Assembly (NCBI GenBank): GCA_030704615.1
Contig: CM060731.1
Coordinates: 77,500,001 to 77,564,000 of the forward strand
Direction: 5' to 3'
Length of the DNA stretch: 64,000 bases
Source of the DNA: Takakia lepidozioides
Lineage: Eukaryota; Plantae; Bryophyta
Numbering within the stretch: the first letter of the stretch is position 1; every line of letters begins with the position of its first letter. Shown one piece after another: positions 5,191-55,400 of this stretch. The position numbers and the translations under genes were made by a program. The notes beneath the pieces were generated by a model. It was not told the DNA's origin. It worked only from the letters and a program-made list of their open reading frames with translations, and did not search any database.

Positions 5191-5356
5191 TCGCTGCCCC
5201 AAAGGAATCTCCTATGTGATGAAGAGGATGGAATTCAGCACAATGAAGAAATAACAGGTGAGGTGCACTGCGGGGGAGGACAAAGGCTCGGAGGGCAGAG
5301 CTTCGGCGGGAGGAAAGGAAGGATGAGAAGGACTTGATGGAGCAGTGGAAGCAGAT

Positions 5357-7631
5357 ATGCTCTGTGGGTTTGTGCGAAGGTTTATAACTAAGAGATTTCA
5401 GTCATGCAGGATGGCAGGGTTGAGGCAGGCACAATCATGCGAATCAAGCACCTCCACTATGGCCACTGGTTTTGGAGGTAGACCCAAAGAGGGAGTCAAC
5501 AAGAATTCTTCTGACAGTTGTGGGGATGTGAGGACTCTATGCAAGGCAGGACAGTTGAAAGAGGTGGTACACAGTTTGAACCGAGGAGATTTTTCCGCAG
5601 ACTCCAGTACTTATGTCTCTCTCTTTCAGGAATGCATCAAGATGAGAGGCCTAGCACAGGGAAAGGAGGTGCATGCCCACATCATCCAAAGTGGATTCAA
5701 GCCAAACACCTTCCTGCTGAACAGCCTTGTCAACATGTATGCCAAGTTGGGAAGCCCAATGGATGCACGCCGAGTGTTTGACAAAATGTCTGAACGAGAT
5801 GTGTTTACCTGGACCATAATGGTGGCAGGATATGCAAAACATGGGTGTGGTAGGGAGGCCCTAGAAATATATAAGCAAATGATACAGGAAGGAGTGACGC
5901 CCAACGGTGTCACGTTCATTTGTGTCCTCAAGGCATGTGCCAGCCTGGCTGTCCTGGGAAAGGGCATAGAGGTCCATGCTGATATCATCAAATCTGGAAT
6001 TGCACCAGATATCATTCTTCAGAATACCCTTGTTGACATGTATGCCAAATGCGGGAGTCTCATGGATGCAATTCAAGTGTTCAACAATATGGCTGGGCGA
6101 GATGTAGTCTCATGGAACACAATGATTGCAGGATATGCTCAGCATGGGTGTGGTACAGAGGCCCTCAAGATGTATGAAGAAATGATACTTGAAGGGCTCT
6201 CGCCAAACAGGGTCACGTTCATCTCTGTTCTCAAGGCATGTTCCAGGCTGGCAGCCCGGCGAAAGGGCGAAGAGGTCCATGCTCACATCATCAAAGCTGG
6301 AATTGCACCAGATGTCATTCTGGAGACGGCCCTGGTTGACATGTATGCCAAATGTGGTGACCTGAAGAGTGCATGTCAAGTGTTCTGTAATATGGCTCAA
6401 CGGAATGTGGTCTCATGGAATGCCATGATTACAGGGTACGCCCAGCAGGGGTGTGGTAGGGAGGCTTTCAGAATGTACAAGAAAATGATACAGAAAAGGG
6501 TTACACCAGACAGGGTCACATTCACTTGCATTCTGAATGCGTGTGCCAGCCTGGCTGCCCTGGAAAAGGGCAAGGAAGTCCATGTTGACCTCATGAAAGT
6601 GGGAATTGTGCCAGATATTATTCTGGAGACTGCCCTTGTTGACATGTATTGCAAATGTGGAGACATGGAGAATGCATGTCGGATATTTGACAATATGGCT
6701 CAAACAAGTGTGGTCTCATGGAGTGCAATGATTGCAGGATATGCTCAGCACGGGTGTTGTGGAGAGGCCCTGCAACTATTTAAACAAATGCAACTGAAAG
6801 GGTTGAAGCCAAATTCTATTACCTTTACATGTGTTCTTGCTGCATGTAGCCATGCGGGCCTAGTTGATGAGGGCTGTCACTACTTTGATTCCATGTCTCG
6901 AGATCATGGCCTCACTCCTACAGTGGAGCATTTTGTTTCCATGGTGGTCCTTCTTGGCCGTGCAGGGCGATTGGATGAGGCAGAGGACTTCATCAAGAAA
7001 ATGCCAATCGAACCTGCTGCTGAGGTGTGGCGGGCCTTGCTTGGTGCCTGCAGAATCCATGGAAATGTGGAAGTGGCAGAACGTGTGACAGAATGTGTCC
7101 TCAAGTGGGATCCCCATGACGCGGCAGCTTATGTACTGTTGTCCAACATCTATGCCACAGCTGGCAGGTGGAAGGATGCTGCAAAGGTGAGGAAAATGAT
7201 GAAGTACAGAATGGTCAGAAAGGAGCCAGGTCGCTGCTACATTGAGGTGGACAACCATATACATTCATTCTTTGTACACGACAAACTGCATCCACAGATT
7301 GGGGAAATCCATGCTGAGCTGCAGAGATTGTCTGGGCAGATGAAGGAGGCCGGGTATGTGCCTGACACGTGCTTTGCATTGCACAATGTGGAGGAGGAAC
7401 AAAAGGAATTTTCTCTTTGCCACCACAGTGAAAAGCTGGCCATCTCTTTTGGGCTCATCAGCACTCCCCCTGGGACGTCCCTGCGGGTCATCAAGAACCT
7501 GCGGGTGTGTGGTGACTGCCACACGGCCACCAAGTTCATCTCAAGGATTGTTGGGCGAGCAATTGTTGTACGGATACCACCGCTTTCACCACTTCCAAGA
7601 TGGGGTTTGTTCTTGTGGGGAGTACTGGTGA
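5357..7631 (+). CDS. PLS-class pentatricopeptide repeat protein with E and DYW domains (organellar C-to-U editing factor type); frameshift at ~7574-7580
   Basis: Intronless, with ~101-aa P-L-S triplets (LVDMYAKCG / VVSWNAMI.GYAQHG / VTF..VL.AC). Has an E domain, PG box (KEPGRCYIEV), HHSEKLA and CGDCH deaminase motifs. The terminal RFHHFQDGVCSCGEYW* is in another frame. Start codon uncertain (5357 or 5411). Confidence 0.93.
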
Positions 7632-8256
7632 GATACTCTTCATAAAGTGTAAGCAAAGAGTAGATAAAGAATGTCCTTGTATGCTTCTTGTATGCCTCAT
7701 TGTGCAGCATTCCTTTGGTTAGTTGGCTCTCCTGATCCAGTTGCAAGAGCTCCTGTCCCCTGATCCCAAGCAGCTTATCAGACACTCTGCAAAATTTATA
7801 CAACATGTAAAATTCCAGAACCTAAAGAATGCCTCAAAAACAAAATGCTTGTGGTGGTGGGTGTCTTCCATTTTTTTTCTTTATTTTTTAATCTTAAGAG
7901 GAAACCTGGGAGAGAATGCTCACAATTCAGGCCCTTGAGGAGGGGCCCCTTCAAATAAGCCATTGGGCACACAAGAGGCGAAGGGCACGCCCGGACTGTC
8001 ACGGTTGTAGAGTCGGTGTTCGGTCGAGGGAAGAAGGGTAGATTCAACCTGCTTCTGAGATTCCTGTTTTCGGTTTCATTTTGAAGACTCCACTGATTTC
8101 ATACATCTGGGATCTTGACGGAGCTTGAGAGCCTGTCTCTGGAAACTTGGGCGGTCTTCTTTTGCCAGTGCACAGCCTAGACAGGAAGTTTGTAGCTATG
8201 GTGACTCCATGAACACAGACATCGGTGACCACCGCCCCAGCGGCTCGTGCCCTGTT

Positions 8257-8410
8257 GCACGTGGATCAGAGGCTATTCGATTCGCCCTGGCACAGACACG
8301 TCCATGGTCGGAAATGGTGGATCGAGCGTCGTTTGGCAGGCCCGAATCTAGCAGCCGCCTTCGCAAGAATGTGAAGTATTTCCACTACAGCATTGTTGTA
8401 ATGGCGGCGT
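8257..8410 (+). pseudogene. PRA1 (prenylated Rab acceptor 1, B-type) N-terminal fragment
   Basis: TRPWSEMVDRASFGRPES-SSRLRKNVKYF resembles the PRA1.B motif RPWxELxDRSxFxRPES...SRLRKNxxYF. It has an internal deletion and no transmembrane remainder. Confidence 0.7.
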
Positions 8411-9214
8411 CAAGACGAGGTTGGGAGACGGAAAAACAAGTCATGTAGCTACAGTGTCAGGAAATTGTTGGATGCGAAATGCTGAAGGAAACCTGACTTT
8501 ATACACACATAACAAGTCAGATGATTTCTGCAAGATCTCTTCAGAATATTGTCTATCTCGCTTATGGTGGAGGAGTAGGCTCAGCACTGGTCGCCTGTGC
8601 TCCATTACACACAAATTCAAAGGCACGAGTAAACATCTTTTTCACAACTCCAAAATACATGACTTCATTGGAGAATGCAACAGAGGACTCCTGAAAATCT
8701 GTGAGCTGCACATGTAAATTATTATGCAGCCATCAAAGATATCCAAAAAAACTGCTGTAGAATGAAACAGACACCCAAAGATATGCATTGTCCAGTTTGT
8801 TTTATTAGTGCATGGTACGCGATTAATACATATCACTCCTGCCGGCTTTTTTTGAGCCTTCTCGTCATTGCTTATAAGGGCCAGATTTCTCAATCGCTAG
8901 CTTATCTAGTGGAGGTATAGCAGGATCTTACTCATTTTTGGCACCAATGCATGGTCTCTCCCTTACTTATAGGGAGGAGCCAATAAAATTTATCTGGCAG
9001 GGCCTTACTAAGTCCCCTGGGAAAAAATACTTATCAAAACTTGTTAAGCCTTGAAGGAGAGGGAACCAGAGCGAGAGAGAGGGGAGGGGGCGGGGGAAGA
9101 GATCCAAAATACAGGGATCCGGAGAGACCCAGGGAGGGGGGAAGAAAGGAGGAGGGAGAAGGAGATTCTTTACGTTTTCCAAGGAAGGAGGGACAGGGAG
9201 ACTGTGAGAAGAAG

Positions 9215-10133
9215 ATGTCGGGACCTCTGGCCAGAGCAGGAAGCTATTTTTTCGCCAAGCGTGCACAAAAGGAGTTGGATTCTTGGGGAAGTGATGTCAA
9301 TGTAATTCTCCTCCTTTCTCTAACCTTCGCTTTCTGTTGGGTTTTCTGGGATGACGTTGGTGTACTCTTCCAGAAACCCCATCTAAGTATTAGTCTGCTG
9401 GGTCTTTGGAAAATGCGTACATCATGTTAAACTTCTCATGCTTTTAATGCAGATCTTGAAAAATGGTGTGTATGGCTGGACGGAGCAGTCCATGTCTAGC
9501 AGCGTAGAAGAAGGTGGCAAACGTTTCATCAACAGATTAAGAGGTTCTATCTCTCTCGACATTGTGCTATCACTCAGTGCATGTAAAATCTTTGCTCAAC
9601 TGTTGTGAGACTTAAATGCTACTGTTATGTGAGCCTAGTCGATGTGGTAGGCTCTGAGTTACTGGTTTGGGCTATTTTGAGGTTGCTGCAGTGGTTACAG
9701 GTATATAATAGCTATGGCCAGCATTTTCTTTTGGAGCTCAAGTGTACCTTAGGGTTTGAGTGGAGATGGCAACTTTTTTGACTGAATACACCCATCAGGA
9801 AGAGCAACTTTGGTGGAGGTTGAACCTGAAAGATGTCTCTCTTGGATGGAAGTGGTAATTGAGGCTTGAAGTAAGGAACATAAGAACCAAAAACGAAGGA
9901 AAAATAAAGGAAAAAGAAGAACGAAGAGGAAAGAAGAACAAACAAGGAGCTGGAAGAAAATGTATTTAGTGAGAGAGAGAGAGAGACAGATTTGGAGTGG
10001 TGCTCAGGCTAAATGAAGGTGGGTGTGGGACAGGAAAAGTGCAAACACCGCTGCCAGATCTCCTGCAACGCTATGAGCTTCCAAGAGGAACATTTCCTAA
10101 AAATGAATTTGATGAAGCCACTGGAAAGATGAC
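9215..10133 (+). pseudogene. DUF538 family (At5g01610-like) gene, first 2.5 exons only
   Basis: GT-AG exons 9215-9301, 9489-9543 and 10034-~10133 splice in frame to MSGPLARAGSYFFAKRAQKELDSWGSDVN-SMSSSVEEGGKRFINRLRG-KVQTPLPDLLQRYELPRGTFPKNEFDEATGKMT. Homology then stops; ~4 aa are missing before EFDE. Confidence 0.8.
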
Positions 10134-11611
10134 AAATCGGTTAACCAAGGCTCAAGGTGCGCTAGTGCATGCAACTTCAGCCAAGGTGAGTTTCTCGGCA
10201 TCTACATTGGAGCTGTAGCTCCGTCTAAAGCACGGCGGCGCCTCTCGAAGGCCTTAGAGACGAGACGCCGTGTCATGCATAGGATAGTTGTTCTGCGCAA
10301 GCAGCGAGAGCAGGCCTGGCAGAGTGAAGTCGGCCGTCTGGCATTCCAGGCATGGACCCACGGTTATCGGAAGGCCCTACATACCCTTGGGTCAAACATG
10401 AAGGCGAAGAAGGCAGTGTTTGATAAGGCTACAGAGTCTGGCATGAAAGCTGCCTTTGATCTAGAGTATACGATGCCAAGGGAGAACCTCAAGAATCTTC
10501 TAACCCAAGAGAAAGATCGCTTCTCCCGCCTGGGGTGGGACTATATTCCCGCTCCTGTGAAAAGGGCTTACGAAAATCTTATCCGGACTATGGAGGAGAC
10601 ATGTGAAGAGCTCAATGGTGGAATTCACGAGGATCATCCTGGTGGTTTTGCAATTGACAGTTGTCAGGATCAGGAAGACCCTGCTTTCCTTGGAGTAGAT
10701 GAAGATGTAGAAGATCACTTTCAGAAAGTGAAACCTAATACTGATATGAAGTATCATAAGGTCATGGATTTGATAGCTGACCAAATGCACTTGCAGCAGC
10801 GTATGATCGTATCAAATCCAGAGGTCCAAGGATGATCTTAGGCGGGGATACTGAATTGGACCCTCCGGGAGAGGAAGTGGTCTTACACTCTCTGGAGGTT
10901 ATCAACTGGGGATGGTTTGAGCACACTGCAGATCAACTGCATGCTGGGACATACTCATTCAAACCTGCGAGACAAGTGAGCCTCTTGAAGCCAGGAAAGC
11001 TGAGGGAAAAGAGACAACTTATGTTGATTGGTCTTGGGGACCAAATAGTACAGGAAGCTGTCAGAGAGGAATTAGAGAGGATTTATGAACCCACATTCTC
11101 GGAGGATGCACATGGGTTCCGACCCGGGAAGTCCTGTCACACAGCACTGAAAAGACTGAGGTCTGGATGGAAAGGAACCGCCTGGTTTATCCAGTTGGAC
11201 TTTCAAAAGTGTGATGATACCTTGATTCAGGAAAGGCTCAAATCCATTCTTTCGGAGAAAATACAGGATCAACAGTTTATGGATATGTTGACACAGATGT
11301 TCAAGGTGGGTATTGTGAGTGTTGGAAGACATACATGTGAGGGTGGAAGCGAACTATCACCTCTGTTGTGTAATATCTACTTTCAGCAACTGGATAAAGA
11401 AGTAGATCAGATTAAGAAAGAGTGGAATACAGGAACTAAGAAATGGAACGTCGATCCAGAACTACAGAAGCTAGTTGATGTCCGGGTCAGGTACATCAGA
11501 TATGTGGATGATTTTCTGATTGGTGTCGCTGGGAGCAAGGCGACTGCACTTGAAGTCCTGAAAAGGGTGAAACATTTCTTACACTCAAACCTAAAGCTGT
11601 ATCTCACCTAA
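10134..11611 (+). CDS. Group II intron maturase / reverse transcriptase (MatR-like), permuted domain order, two 1-nt frameshifts, no X domain
   Basis: RT0 L.AAYDRIKS (~10791), RT2 DQIVQEAV..LE.IYEPTFSEDAHGFRPGKSCHTAL, RT3 WFIQLDFQKC, RT4 GSELSPLLCNIYF..LD, RT5 RYIRYVDDFLIG and RT6 FLHSNLKL. An RT7-like VEFLGIYI lies upstream at ~10186-10208. Confidence 0.85.
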
Positions 11612-12159
11612 AGCTGCTTCCTACCTGCTTCACTTCTTTTGGGCCACTTGTAAATGACTAGACTTGCTTGTTTCCTGTGCTTTTATTAGGTCTCTACTAT
11701 GTTCAGAGCTGGGTGGTGATGGCTGTGAGAGATGCAGGAGGTTACGGTCAATCAGTTTTATGGGGTTCTACTCATGGGTCTTGCAGAGAGTGACCTTTGT
11801 AGTGTGTGTGCGTGCACTGTCTACAAAGTCGCCATGTTGTGATTGTCAACAAGAACTACGTGTGCAGCAGGAGCCACTCATGCCATTCATGTCTTTGGAC
11901 ACTATACTGGGTAAAATTGGCCTCGGACAGGCTACTCACACTTCAGTCAGTAAAAATGTCAGAGATTTAATACCACAGCCAGAGTGACAAACTAGAAAGC
12001 AACCCTTCTGGCGGTTGTAATAACATGGAAGAAAGTCTTTGATAGAATGGAATCAATTCATTCTCACCAAATATCATCCTGATTATACAGCTATGGACAA
12101 TCTGCTCTCTGTGGAACTCCATGAAACTGGGATTGACACAATCATATCTGCAGCCAGTG

Positions 12160-12463
12160 TCAAAACTGGGCTCCTTCATAAGACTGACCAAAACTCCAAC
12201 CCGCAGGAGCAACATCCATGGATGTTAACGACCTCCCATCAGAAGTGGTAACAAGAAATGATACAGCTTGTCCCACGAACTTGGTGCTGCACTGCCAGTT
12301 CTGGCTCCAGTTTCTTGACATTGGAACCCAATTGGCGTTGGATCCTTTCATCGAAATTGAGCTCACATCACCGGTACCACCCACATTGGTGACAAGCACC
12401 AGATTGAAGAATGGATTTCCATTAATTGTGAAACGTATTCCCCCCGCCTTCACACAGGCAGTT
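12160..12463 (-). pseudogene. Alpha-expansin terminal exon (orphan)
   Basis: [29 protein letters not shown]...[10 protein letters not shown]...[12 protein letters not shown] preceded by the acceptor ctttcag. No upstream DPBB-domain exons found in 12.5-16 kb. Confidence 0.85.
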
Positions 12464-14089
12464 CTGAAAGAAAACATCCAGAATTGTTAATAGCAATCGT
12501 TAACATGCAAGCAAAAACGGGGGAGCCGCGTTTCTGGGAAACAGTTGAGCTCACCACCTCAAGGGATTTCCAGGATTTAACCTACTGCTTATGAGTATAC
12601 AAGGAAAACAAGCAGTTAGTCGCGTAATGGCACACCCTAAACGTCTAAGTAAAATTTTTTCTTAAAATATTATATTGAAATAAGACAATCACACATTCAA
12701 ACTATATTTTAAATTGCATAAGAGAAAATTGTGAGCAGTCGCTCCCAGGTTTCCTTTAAAAAAAAAAAGAGAGAAAACATTATTTATTTTTTTATTTATA
12801 AACCAGGGAAAGGCGGCCCTGTCAGAACTTTATTGATGAAAGTTAAATTATTGATGTATGATATATATATATATATATATTGAGGAACAGGGACGGACCC
12901 TTGAGAACTTTATTAAATGATTATTTAAGGGAAAACAATTAAAACCCTTTAAATGCCCTCAGGCTGCCATAAGGCATAACACACGGAGGACCGTGCAGGA
13001 TAGGTCCGGGACCATAACCGAGAGAGGACTCTGGAATGAACTGCATTTAGAACCCACAGGGACTCGATGCATTTTCTAAAACCTAGAAGACCTTGGTAAG
13101 ATCCGCCAGAAACCATTATCCGTAACGGAGGTAGGACTGGATCTATGATAGTGGACAGAACTGAGAACAGGGAAGCAGAAGGATGGTGAGGGTGCATGGA
13201 GGAGGCTGGGAGAGCAGGAGAATAGCAGGGCGAATCTGATTGCTAATTGCCTGCCCTGGAGAGAGCCAAGAGTCTAGCTGTGGAAATGAAGACGAGTTGC
13301 TGAACCTGCTCTAATATGCCTCCAATTAATCTCTGTTCTGTCAAATTCTGGGGAGGCTGAAGAGGTAACTCCTACTTCCTTGCTAGCAGGAGGGGATTGA
13401 ATCTGCCCAAAGACGGGTGAGGCCAACAACTTTGCAAATGAGTCCGTGCTTGATGATATTACAAAACTGATCTTCAGATTTACTAATTATTAAAATATTG
13501 AGATGCTTGTTGAAATATTAACTGAAATGTTGAAATACTTGTTAAAGAACTAGTAAAATATAAAATTCTTGCTGGCTGAAATACTGGAATACTCGCTGAA
13601 AAACTGGCTGAAATACTGAAATACCACCTGAGCCTTATACACATATGCTGCAAGAGATAGTCCAAATGCTACCTCTAAGAGGATTCACAAGTTCACTTGA
13701 TAGCCCAAAGGCAGTGGATACTTTGCTGGAATTTCATGATAGATTGCAAGGCAGGGAGCGTTCCCATCTCAAGATATAAGAATACCTTAAAGTAACGGAA
13801 GAAGGCTGTCTTCACAAGTTTTTGGAGAAGTGGGTGAAGGAACATGACCAACTTAAGTTCGTACATGACCAACTTACATTGATACATGAGCCGTTTTAAA
13901 TCCTCATGAATGTTGCTCCTCATCCATGTCATTCATCCGTTTGGGAAGTGGGGATCGCTACCCAATATCCAGCGGTTCACATTTATCCTTGTTTTCCCAC
14001 TAGCTCCCTTTCCCGTGCTATGTTGAGATCGGGGAGAGGTTCCCATGCTTAAAGTAACAAGTTGTAGCGCTTGATTGCTTTGAGAGTCG

Positions 14090-16906: not shown

Positions 16907-18456
16907 ATGGCATTGAGACAGGAAACTATGGCAGGAAAGCAAGAGGAGGAAGTAGAAAAACAAGAAGAGGACGTATACTTGGTAGGAAAACCAGAGGAGG
17001 AGATATCTAACTTAGTGAGACAAGAGTATGAGTCTGTGACAGTGAAAGAAGAGAAGACAGCTGCATTAGTGAAAGCACATGAATTAACGGAGGACAATTT
17101 TGGTTTACCAAAATCTAATGTCTGTAAGGACCAAGGCAACTCTTCTCCAAAAGAAGAAACTAGAAATTGCCATTGCGGATGTCTAAGCTACCTAACCAAG
17201 GTGACAAAGCCCAATCACAACAATGGCAAACTGTTTTTTGGTTGCGGGGCATGGACACCCTCGAGGGTCGGAGATGTGGCTTTTTTGAGTGGTATGATGA
17301 GGAACAGATGCACAGGAATGAGAAGGTACCGAAACAAGAGGAGGAGGTTATCATGGCAGTAAATAGAAATGGGGAGGCACTGAAACAAGAGGAGGTCATC
17401 ATGGGAGTGAAACAAGAGGAGGTGCCTATCTTAATGAAACAAGAGGAGGTCATCATGGGAGTGAAAGAAGAGGGGTTGCCTATCTTAATGAAACAAGAGG
17501 AGGTAATTATGGGAGTAAAACACGAGGAAGTGCCTACGTTAATGAAACACGAGGAGGAGAATGGTTCTTCTGGTGCTGGTTCCTTATCAAAGGCTTTACC
17601 AACGTCTAATGGCCAAGAGAACTCTGATTTGAAAGAAGAAATCAGAATTTGCTACTGTGGATGTGTAAGCCATCTCACCAGGGTGACAAAACTCAACTAC
17701 AACCATGGCAGAATGTTTTTTGGTTGTGGGGCATGGACACCCTCTGCAGGACGAAAATGTGAGTTTTTTGAGTGGTATGATGAAGATGAAGGGCACATGA
17801 ATGGGCAGGGGAAGACAATGGGCATGGAAACAGAATATCTCCTCAAACTTCAATTGAATATGGAAAGTAGTGATAGCCTGAAAAGAAAGCATAGGAAAGA
17901 AGTCACCCAGGAGGAGGAAGATCATTCAGTGGAGATGGGTTGCAAAAGAATGCATGTGGCAGAAGACTCCACAGAAGACTCCACAGAAGACTCCACAAGG
18001 ATATGTTATTGTGGAGCAGTGTCTTACAAAACTAGGGTCACAAAGGCTAGTTGTAACAACGGCAGGATTTTTTATGGATGTGGCCGGTGGACACCTGAGG
18101 GGAGGAAATGTCAATTTTTCGAATGGCATCCAGATCATTATAGTGCCCCAAGGGTATGGGATAATTTTGTAATTAGCACCATCGCAGCAAATTATGCCCT
18201 TCAAGCTATGAGAAAGAATCTGTTTGATTTCGATGAAGAGGATGAAGAGCAAGGACCCTATTCGGATGAAGAGGCTGGATCCTGCGGAGTCGAAGAGGAG
18301 CTCTCTGATTACAATGAAGAGGATGGAGAGGATGGCCCTGATTCCACTGAAGAGGATGGCTGCAGTGGAGTTGAAGAGGCTGGGTCTGACTTCAATGAAG
18401 AGGATAAATCCAGCAGAGTTCAAGATGATGGACTCAGCCAGAACAATTCTGTGTAA
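16907..18456 (+). CDS. Protein with three GRF-type zinc fingers, KQEE repeats and an acidic tail; 1-nt frameshift at 17263
   Basis: Three copies of CxCG...N.G(R/K)xFxGC...CxFFEW. ORFs 16907-17362 and 17167-18456 join if one G is added at 17263 (~516 aa). Confidence 0.75.
17380..17560 (+). repeat. Coding tandem repeat (54-nt period, KQEEVIMGVKQEEVPILM, ~3 copies)
   Basis: Directly visible in the DNA and the translation. Confidence 0.85.
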
Positions 18457-52480: not shown

Positions 52481-55400
52481 ATGTTGTTGATTCGCCTCTT
52501 CCATGCACTAATTTGTATTCAACAGCCTTTCGTGATGGTGTTACTGGGGATGTTGGTAATTCAAGACCGCCCACCTGGCCCCACTGGCTCTACATGGCAG
52601 CCAGACCCTATGTTTGATAGAAGAAAGGGGGAGGGAACGGCTGCTCAATTTGGAATGTATTCACAGTGTGGTGTCCCAAGGTACACCACCCACTACCCAA
52701 CTCTTGTGTTTGATTTTGGACAGTCCAGTTCTAGAGGGCCAGTGAGTCGTCAAGTTAGCTTAGAATGTGGAGCTGAGGCTAGGAGTAGCTGGTCCACACA
52801 GCCAACGGCAGAGCCTCTTCCCCGTCCCATGGGAGAGATGGCCCGGCCAGGCAACCTATCCATGCAGCCTTCCTCCCCAACTATGGGAGAGGCGAGTCTG
52901 CCTGTCAGTCAGTCACAACAGCTTATTGCTCGTCCAGAATCTGAGTCGGTTCCTGCTAAGGTGAGAAGGCCCGAGGACCAGTATTATGATCAGTGTAATC
53001 AGTTTTTGAAGCAAGAGAACTGTTGTGTTGGTCATGGTCCTTTGCATAGTGGCCACCATGGGCATAATCACCAAGTCCCATGGAGCCCTAAACCCACTAT
53101 GCACCCGTACCCTGAATATTCTATGGGAGATAAATTTGAACAATACTTGCGTATGTTTCAGATAACTGCTGAGATGAATGGTGTTCCTGCACAATTTCGT
53201 GTGGGTGTGTTTCGAATGAGTATGAAGGGACAGGCTAGAGATTTATTGCATGTTGTTGTTAACGATGAGCCTAACTTGACCTAGGACATGTTAATTCGTA
53301 AAGCTAGAATGTTGTTTAAACCAGCTGAGAGGCCCCTCGACTGATTTGCCAAATTATCTACACGGGTTTATAAGGAAGGTGAACCAATTTGGCAATATTA
53401 CATGGATCTTAAAGAGGCAGCAGCAGAAAACTTTGAAGATGTGGTGCAGAGAGATAATATGTTCAAGACCTACTTTTTGATGGGTTTGCCTGTTGAGATC
53501 CAGGCATGGGCTCAACGTCGCACATTTAAGAACAATGATGTTATGGTAGAGGAGGTTAGATTGAGGTTGTTAGATTTGGCTAACAACAAAGTAAGGCAAC
53601 AACATGTTAGATTTCAGGCTCCCGTCATGAGTCATGAATTTGATCATGTGTCTGCTACAGTTGCTCCCTATCTCCCGCCTGCTATGAAGGCCAGGGCAAA
53701 TGAATTATCACTGCAGCAATTGGCCAACACGGTGGAAGATCTCAGTAGCTCTATTGCTACAGTTTGCTGCTTTCAAGGTGAGTGATCAGAGGAAAGAGTG
53801 GCAGCCCAAAAAAAATGAACAAGGGGGTGGTGCCAACATGGGTCGCACTCAGACAGGTGACAGGTATGATAGTCAACGTGTTGCATGCTACATTTGTGGC
53901 TCACATGAACACTACACTAGGTTCTGCCCTGAGAAGGATGATGTGGCTGATTGGATTAGGGCCAAGAAGGCCGCTGGTCCTGGTCCTTTAAACTAACCCG
54001 ATCTCTTGGACAGGGGGCAAGGGATCAAAAATTGACTCACCTTGCTACTCAGGTTACGTTGCGTGCTGTCTTATCCACCAACTTTAAGGCCCTGCACTGC
54101 GAATTTAACAAGAAACATAAAATCCAAAAGATCAGTCCCCTAATGACTTAGTGTCATGTGCATGCATTGAGTTTCCTTTGTGTTGTAGACACGGGCTGCA
54201 CCATGTCTGCAATACCCCTGCAAGTAGTTAGAGTTCTCGGTCTTAAGCTTATTCCTGCTACCGGACTTAAAGTCCTTATTGCTGACGGGTCTAGATATGA
54301 ACCTTTGGGGATGGTTACTGTCCCCATAAGGGTTCACAGAAAAGAAGTTGTTGTTACATGCATAGTCACTATTGGGGATCAGTTCCTGCTGGGTCTTGAC
54401 TGGATGTCTGGAGCTAGAGCTACTATTAACTTGGGGGAATTACTCTGTGCATTTTTCTAATGGGGAAGGGAATGAGGTGGTGGTGCCCTTGAAATCAGCT
54501 ACTATGAGATCTGGATGCGCCACAGCCAATCTGTCTAGGGTATAAGCCATGGTAAGTGAGGTGAGACAGCGCTCCTTAGGTGACATGAATTGGTCTGATT
54601 TATATAAATACAAGCCAGATCTTCAGTACATGTATCAATGGCATGCTCCTGCTGTGGGCCAGAAAACTAGTGCCCCTATCACTGTGCTTAAAAACACCAC
54701 TTTGATACGAGCACCTGTTGATGTTGTCATTCCCCCCATGACCCAGAAGATTGTCAAGACTAGTCTTGCTTTCATTTGTCCTCGGGGTCATTATCTTGAA
54801 ATTGAAGGATGGAGGAGACTTACTGCACTAAGACACTGTCTTGTGGCTGCTGGAGTCCTAGATCGTGGGTACAAACAAGAAATTCAGATCCTAGTGGCAA
54901 ACCCAGAGCCATTCCCTGTCACTATCAGACGTAGTCAAGTTTTGGCTCGCATTTCTGCTTTGCCCATTACTGATATACATGAAGTCCAAAGGGGCTTTGG
55001 TTTGGAGGCTCTTGGGATTGTGTATGGACAGGTTGATGAGGTCATGGCCTTGGCTGCTAGTACTCCTCCACCTACTTCCCATTTGCCTGCAGCAGATCAG
55101 ACAGCTCTCAAGAAGGTTTTATCTGAAATTAATATAGGGGAGTCTCTTTCCAAAGCTCAGCGCAGAAAGGCTGAATCCTTGGTTGCTCGCAACTTAGACA
55201 TCTTCAGCTTAGGGCCCTCTGATTTGGGTAAGACTCCTATCCTGGAGCATGATATTATTACTGAGGGGGCTCCTGTCAAACAATTTGCATATCGAGAGAG
55301 TATTAAGGAAATGTCAATAGTATATAAGGAGATTCATAAGATGTTAGATGATGGTGTCATTAAACCTTCAGTTTCACCATGGCTAGTCCCATAGTCTTAG

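Follow-up and report, generated by a model that had tools for sequence, protein, structure and literature searches.

Maturase reverse transcriptases (RTs) are relatives of Prp8 and of the LINE and telomerase RTs. To our knowledge, the order of their motifs, RT0 to RT7, has been treated as fixed. The nuclear maturases of plants (nMATs) keep RT0 to RT7 in this order, together with a conserved domain X (PMC3927076, PMC9321910), and as far as the account in PMC3927076 goes, Guo and Mower 2013 added five new nuclear loci from Physcomitrella. MatR carries a long insertion between RT7 and X (PMC9321910). Maturases are anchored on intron domain IV through RT0 and the fingers-palm (PMC7641739, PMC9321910), and for LtrA the thumb/X domain has been reported to be essential in splicing (PMC7641739). 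Natural permutations have been described in related retroelements, namely, circularly permuted group II introns, in which RNA domains are permuted (PMC8637638), and Penelope-like elements, in which whole protein domains are reordered (PMC8557442). As far as these accounts go, neither case involves a cut inside the RT palm.

Here we describe a maturase gene family in which all group II (ML) type RT motifs from RT0 to RT7 are present but their order is permuted. One copy lies in the window, the 64-kb stretch of Takakia lepidozioides DNA that was analyzed. Our results point to a real, conserved circular permutation at the level of a family, apparently unreported so far. The literature searched contained no report of a permuted maturase protein; Guo and Mower 2013 lay outside that search, and an earlier notice is possible. 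In Zumkeller and Knoop 2023, the string "permut" does not occur. We consider it probable that two layers are superimposed here, an ancient permutation of an X-less nuclear maturase in mosses and, in the window, a pseudogene copy captured by a Pack-type element.

Like nMAT1 to nMAT4 of angiosperms and the nuclear loci of Physcomitrium, the members are free-standing nuclear genes derived from a mitochondrial group II intron ORF, and they share with nMAT-type genes a degenerate RT, an acquired N-terminal exon, and purifying selection. Unlike the nMATs, they begin with RT7 and the linker, end after RT6, and have no X. As both the canonical order and domain X are missing, we regard the family as a variant and not as a plain nMAT-type member. 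The MatR-type maturases (MatR/mat-nad1i728g2; Coleochaete YP_009710066 and YP_009710072) and the permuted family both have a long RT7-to-X segment, and the post-RT7 motif of the family, K.LE.RRRV..RI, matches the Coleochaete proteins. However, MatR-type maturases are intron-borne, have the normal order, and retain X, whereas the permuted family does not share these features; MatR is without RT0, which the permuted family has. In the RT tree, from which land-plant MatR was left out, the permuted family does not group with the Coleochaete proteins. An X-less moss nuclear maturase family (P0003/P0157 and P0237) falls in the same starred clade (described below), also lacks X, and ends at the same linker helix. 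These proteins and the half maturase XP_024361148 have the normal domain order, unlike the permuted family. The X-less family is represented here by metagenome contigs alone, so its host is presumed. The locus at L010 3275-5113 and P0237, with normal order, an end after the linker, and no X, look like a further undescribed family of nuclear maturases.

Domain order and reading frames of the window copy

The original prediction placed RT7 and the linker ahead of RT0-RT6, and aligning both halves to profiles confirmed this order. The segment at 10132-10614 precedes the RT half, which ends with its stop codon at 11609-11611. A profile made only from the post-RT6 part of 24 canonical maturases had a single match in the six-frame translation of the window (nt 10188-10614, E 6.5e-16; runner-up, E 0.79), and this linker match covers profile positions 16-150 of 181. 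RT0-RT6 at 10781-11608 match LtrA (E 2.6e-36) and Pfam RVT_1 (E 2e-17), and both matches end just past RT6. Identity to the Sphagnum protein P0195 is 58% over 19 aa in RT7 and 49% in the linker. The two ends also dovetail at RT6/RT7 as predicted: the C-terminal end ..LKLYLT, directly before the stop, and the N-terminal start QGALVH..KV meet within a few residues. Canonical relatives read LKLNLT-GGEITH..KVKFLG across RT6/RT7, and the two ends of the window copy are therefore complementary to within a few residues. With a frame open from 10116 to 10832, there are indeed ~197 stop-free codons between RT7 and RT0, and the predicted absence of domain X was likewise found, as the X profile had no match in the window and recovered the control locus L013 at 1.8e-51. 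Canonical profiles gave no match to the spacer at the permutation join, which in orthologues is variable in length and under relaxed selection. The features are listed in Table 1.

Table 1. Features of the window copy, of the putative element around it, and of the Sphagnum L11 exon (fragments of other genes in the element are termed captured on the putative reading)
Feature	Position	Strand	Remarks
Left terminal inverted repeat (29 bp)	7899..7927	+	27/29 bases are the reverse complement of 12727-12755
Captured PRA1-family fragment	8287..8406	+	Pfam PRA1 E 5.3e-07, slightly below the curated threshold
Short high-copy repeat inside the element	8903..8988	.	DNA contig depth 2855, many loose ends
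Captured DUF538 exon 1 (ATG to GT donor)	9215..9301	+	GT at 9302, phase 0
Captured DUF538 exon 2	9489..9543	+	CAG before, GT after
Captured DUF538 exon 3, 5' part, to the fusion point	10034..10130	+	Pfam DUF538 E 0.0038, under the threshold
RT7 (primer-grip hairpin) of the permuted maturase	10131..10210	+	Aligns with canonical post-RT6 segments
Helical RT7-to-X linker, complete to its last helix	10191..10614	+	Canonical-only profile E 6.5e-16
Permutation join, acidic spacer from linker end to pre-RT0	10615..10700 (limits approximate)	+	
Pre-RT0 and RT0-RT6, TAA stop 11609-11611	10701..11611	+	RVT_1 and LtrA matches
Captured expansin 3' end	12031..12477	-	Expansin_C E 2.4e-28
Right terminal inverted repeat	12727..12755	-	27/29 match with the left end
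L11 N-terminal-domain exon	L011 6001-6190; L001 6001-6186		Start of a Sphagnum paralogue

One point of the original prediction did not hold. It had read 10134-11611 as one ORF, but three frames are involved. Compared with the orthologues, the window copy is one base short at 10189-10190 and again at 10780-10783, and thus the stretch is not a single ORF. Frame 1 contains the DUF538 piece followed by NRLTKAQGALVHATSAKV and a stop at 10216. Frame 2, the open frame mentioned above, holds FLG and the helical segment, and frame 3, which encodes RT0-RT6, is entered through the one-base loss at 10780-10783. The peptide that had been quoted as the start of the maturase also turned out to span two frames, with the break at 10189-10190. 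In our analyses, the gene was translated through the breaks with an X placed at each. By exon phases, the DUF538 frame enters RT7 and ends at 10216-10218 after 108 codons. The two frameshifts and the end of the spliced frame at this point indicate that the window copy is a pseudogene, one that retains YVDD and the RT3 aspartate. The base loss in RT7 creates a consensus 5' splice site, AAG-GTGAGT, at 10183-10191, and no joint from 10185 was present among the contigs.

A local misassembly, which the original prediction had named as a possible refutation, can be ruled out, as gap-free contigs from two other studies run across both joins; the evidence consists of assembled contigs, not long reads. 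A contig of run X5 is gap-free over 10076-10600, crossing the DUF538/RT7 join and the first frameshift, and one of run X6 is gap-free over 10131-11178, crossing the linker/RT0 join. X5, X6, and the DNA run X1 come from three separate studies.

The contigs also revealed a second maturase copy in this organism, with the same order and a different 5' end that joins at 10131. Both parents of the junction at 10130/10131 are seen in X6, where contig 16, with 12 additional bases at 10102, continues from the DUF538 side past 10130 into other sequence and another contig has 405 different bases leading up to the start of the maturase. DNA contig depth is ~30-38 on window-identical (flank) contigs versus 52-60 on collapsed contigs, which points to two copies. 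An additional C follows position 10780 of the other copy in X1 and X5 and brings RT0 back into frame. Among 37 differences between the copies, which are a listed subset, there are 12 silent and 8 replacing differences in the conserved parts and 2 silent and 15 replacing ones in the spacer and pre-RT0 part. Contig 17 of X6 has the 5' end of the other copy yet carries both frameshifts and, judging by its variants, is probably a mosaic of the two. An intact donor copy is likely to be present in the Takakia genome. Two runs guessed to be RNA contain contigs identical to the window, so the window copy may be transcribed.

The permuted family in Sphagnum and other lineages

The closest relatives of the RT half of the window copy have linker sequence at their start and end right after RT6. 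On Sphagnum chromosomes, the permuted order, the breakpoint, and the stop after RT6 are found in two paralogues and four species (S. jensenii, S. troendelagicum, S. tenellum, and S. balticum). Both paralogues are annotated at full length, the first as CAK9863887.1, CAK9203289.1, and CAM6058486.1 (672-673 aa) and the second as CAK9201220.1, CAN5957672.1, and CAM6029057.1 (631-650 aa). Intact permuted ORFs of Sphagnum span 574-673 aa with both halves in one chain. The loci are nuclear (chromosomes 18-22 Mb, nuclear neighbors), and their proteins are currently annotated as unnamed, RT-domain, or L11-domain proteins. A Ribosomal_L11_N exon begins one of the paralogues (Pfam E 1.4e-10). The exon resembles that of a mitochondrial L11 and would be compatible with a borrowed import signal.

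The same order and end occur in contigs L002, L003-L006, L007, and L012, and P0235 also belongs to the family. The contigs derive from metagenomes or unlabeled runs; the tree and the introns suggest that they represent four to six further moss lineages. A spliceosomal GT-AG intron is found at one shared linker position in L002, L003/L006, and L012 and is absent from the window and Sphagnum genes. A word-based search found no Physcomitrium member of the permuted clade, but it also missed the known P0001 and P0007, and this blank is therefore no evidence of absence.

Some individual loci deviate in detail. In L001 (Sphagnum jensenii, GCA_963971075.1), the permuted gene has an in-frame TGA at 7102-7104 that is skipped by an annotated intron in CAK9261468.1, and in L011, from another S. 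jensenii assembly, the frame is open at this point. The L007 orthologue is out of frame through a one-base loss before the donor of the linker intron (~725-740), either an error or a sign of a pseudogene. In L003, the linker intron (930-2210) contains several decayed, incomplete repeats of the exon edges that flank it, with pieces resembling LRSGL and KAKQAIFDKATELGM. As read from the sequence, these repeats are a trace of an internal tandem duplication within a permuted gene.

Both halves of the permuted genes are under purifying selection. Among intact ORFs, dN/dS values (Nei-Gojobori) were 0.03-0.41 for RT7 and the linker and 0.26-0.40 for RT0-RT6, with most of the deeper pairs saturated at silent sites. 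Between the Sphagnum paralogues, the join spacer gave 0.61-0.72. A structure was modeled for P0217:101-631 from a 52-row alignment, with a mean pLDDT of 65; only these rows were used because deeper mixed alignments misplaced the RT7 rows, and a run on a shallow alignment (pLDDT 44) was set aside. The modeled RT0-RT6 superposes on crystal structures of maturase RTs (Z 20.5, rmsd 2.5 Å, 229-240 residues), and the superposition, made with a sequential aligner, ends where RT7 should begin. The N-terminal RT7 is predicted to form a two-strand beta-hairpin followed by long helices (pLDDT 48-55), and in a true permutant this hairpin would be docked on the palm.

Age and origin of the permutation and a possible function

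In a tree of RT0-RT6, the eight permuted rows form one clade (95/94, starred) in which the window copy is sister to the rest. This clade is nested in a larger starred clade (100/99) of moss nuclear maturases, to which the X-less, normal-order P0003/P0237 and the RT0-RT4 family of Physcomitrium XP_024361148 also belong. The nearest sampled relatives of the permuted family, as judged from the sequences, are normal-order moss nuclear maturases that also lack X. Within the RT tree, the grouping of the permuted with the X-less proteins is weak (85/26), and fast-evolving nuclear copies may attract each other in such trees. In the linker tree, the permuted family is nearer to algal mitochondrial maturases (unstarred). 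A search with the Coleochaete linker returned only itself. A single permuted clade with a shared breakpoint indicates one permutation, which took place before the window lineage split from Sphagnum and the rest. The intact, conserved orthologues with the same order argue for an ancient circular permutation of a nuclear maturase.

This bears on the interpretation offered by the original prediction, of which one part stands, a true circular permutation cut between RT6 and RT7, and the other, the origin of the window copy, does not. The window copy had been derived from a circular intermediate opened at this point, but its parent was already permuted, as seen in Sphagnum, in the other lineages, and in the second copy. 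The other source suggested, a parent gene with tandem RT domains, was found neither in the window nor in loci L001-L014, nor was one among the 398 proteins retrieved. With the same order present in the orthologues and the second copy, a circle or a tandem duplication is possible only for the ancient event. A recent permutation of the window copy is ruled out by the occurrence of the same breakpoint in intact orthologues from many independent assemblies. More broadly, we rate the chance that it was either permuted recently through a circular intermediate or misassembled locally as vanishingly small, since only the dovetailing ends speak for this, while intact orthologues share the breakpoint and independent contigs bridge both joins.

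In the ancient event, the piece that moved comprises the complete RT7-to-X linker through its last helix, the very point at which the X-less family stops, and in the permuted proteins the pre-RT0 motif comes after the spacer. The permutant is therefore a full rotation of an X-less core. We propose that a nuclear-encoded maturase of the mitochondrial group II intron type, with domain X already lost, was circularly permuted early in mosses. The old C-terminus, at the end of the post-RT7 linker, would have been joined through a flexible spacer to the old N-terminus at pre-RT0, and new termini would have arisen between RT6 and RT7. Of the possible routes, tandem duplication, followed by in-frame read-through fusion and trimming of both ends, is our first choice, with moderate confidence; a DNA or RNA circle comes next at a clearly lower level, and a fusion of two donors is rated slightly lower still. 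For the circle, one would suppose that eccDNA or a back-spliced single-exon RNA of the X-less gene was opened at RT6/RT7 and integrated before a targeting exon. This full scenario is improbable in our view, although the new termini match up to within a few residues without a real overlap or gap, the displaced piece and RT0-RT6 add up to exactly one full X-less core, and the core is a single exon in both the window and Sphagnum. A tandem fusion trimmed under structural selection yields the same end state, however, and the join is diverged, variable in length, and unmarked by a splice site or repeat; moreover, the circle would have to be in frame and free of the old stop. Fission and fusion, in which the halves came from two maturase paralogues or were separated by mitochondrial recombination before transfer and then fused in the nucleus, appears a shade less probable than the circle. 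Under this scenario, the N-terminal piece may be a separate helical module that does not dock. Such an origin would fit the similarity of RT7 and the linker to algal mitochondrial maturases (E 1e-12 to 1e-9, versus 1e-5 to 1e-3 for the X-less moss family), the separation of the permuted from the X-less family in the linker tree, and the existence of split maturase genes in mosses, where XP_024361148 ends after RT4. Against this, grouping with the X-less family in the linker tree, that is, one donor, was not rejected by an AU test (p-AU 0.31), the X-less linker sits on a long branch (2.18), the documented split lies behind RT4 rather than RT6, and the exact complementarity at RT6/RT7 would be a coincidence.

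Selection maintains the product as a fingers-palm protein that is RT-dead and without X. No member retains the PQG of RT4, and in the orthologues YxDD and the RT3 aspartate are without exception lost or degraded, with YxDD replaced by FADE, VADE, YAED, NAEE, and YGEE. These losses make polymerase activity of the permuted protein unlikely. The X profile matched only the control L013 and none of the permuted loci, and Pfam recognized neither Intron_maturas2 nor GIIM in P0195 and P0217. As LtrA is reported to need its thumb/X, a protein without X needs a partner or works differently. The simplest reading of the sequences is that of an imported, RT-dead, RNA-binding splicing cofactor whose X would be supplied by another protein or which would act as an X-free chaperone. 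Such a protein would most likely enter mitochondria and bind group II intron RNA through RT0, with RT7 contributed from the N-terminus and any thumb or X function from another protein. Mitochondrial import, RNA binding, the splicing role, and the trans partner are deduced in this proposal, as are the permutation route and the transposon capture. We suggest only tentatively that the conserved moss permutant is the RT-dead fingers-palm subunit of a modular mitochondrial maturase, binding intron RNA and assembling with a domain-X protein from another gene.

That a permutant with its cut inside the palm is under selection across deep moss lineages suggests that the maturase fold tolerates new ends at RT6/RT7 and that maturases can be of use even without domain X, which is considered essential for splicing. 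Domain annotation has hidden the permutation. In a moss amenable to gene targeting, the family could be used to test directly how maturases borne by introns become trans-acting, modular splicing factors, and if the modular reading is true, it would be an extant example of a cis-acting maturase dismantled and rewired into such factors.

The putative element around the window copy and its neighbors

Pack-type elements (Pack-MULE and Pack-TYPE) have terminal inverted repeats around fragments of several host genes. The window copy is enclosed by a putative Pack-type DNA element of 4.9 kb (7899-12755) with 29-bp inverted ends. A 14-mer core of the inverted repeats occurs at only two sites in the window, both of them element ends, and the same ends were found nowhere else in the 64 kb. 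The element resembles Pack-type elements in its gene fragments with introns, its chimeric frame, and the lack of a recognizable transposase between its inverted ends, and it differs in that its ends are only 29 bp long. A possible target-site duplication, TAA, flanks the element only when its two ends are shifted outward by one base, to 7898 and 12756, and the AT-rich flanks weaken this further; a TAA flank would presumably point to PIF/Harbinger. The DUF538 introns are kept inside the element, and contigs show DUF538 joints at 9301-9492 and 9541-10032. The joint from 9301 is seen in a contig of a diverged DUF538 parent from a run guessed to be RNA. Diverged second copies were seen for the DUF538, maturase, and expansin pieces; the expansin one, from X6, has a loose end at 12465. 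The earlier description of this DNA had not picked up the inverted-repeat element around the copy, the DUF538 fusion, or either of the frameshifts.

Judging from these sequences, a nonautonomous Pack-type DNA transposon would have picked up the gene after its permutation, leaving out the gene's own 5' end, and placed it behind the DUF538 exons, alongside the PRA1 and expansin pieces. The alternative is that the window copy is a functional young chimera of a DUF538 leader and a permuted maturase, its frameshifts being assembly errors or spliced around from 10186. The intact DUF538 splice sites, the in-frame join into RT7, the window-identical contigs in two runs guessed to be RNA, and the retained YVDD and RT3 aspartate are what one would expect of such a gene. 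Nevertheless, we consider it highly doubtful, as the 10189 loss is present in contigs of two independent studies and the 10780 loss in one, all gap-free, no joint from 10185 was seen, and the copy sits in an inverted-repeat element full of gene fragments. With capture by the putative Pack-type element as the preferred reading, the window copy makes a small point of its own, namely, that such elements may shuffle pieces of these genes in the Takakia genome.

The window as a whole is plant nuclear DNA, with matches to PPR-DYW, expansin, DUF538, GRF-finger, Kelch, and TMEM62 proteins. At 5345-7645, there is a PLS-type PPR gene with E, E+, and DYW domains. Its DYW match spans only positions 1-74 of 93 and the end of the ORF is out of pattern, and the sequence suggests a late frameshift in this gene. 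An ORF at 17167-18456 encodes a pair of GRF zinc fingers, contains a tandem array of 27-bp units (17354-17557) and acidic repeats of 33-48 bp, and may be part of a transposon. A dUTPase-like ORF (Pfam E 4e-08) lies at 54549-55394.
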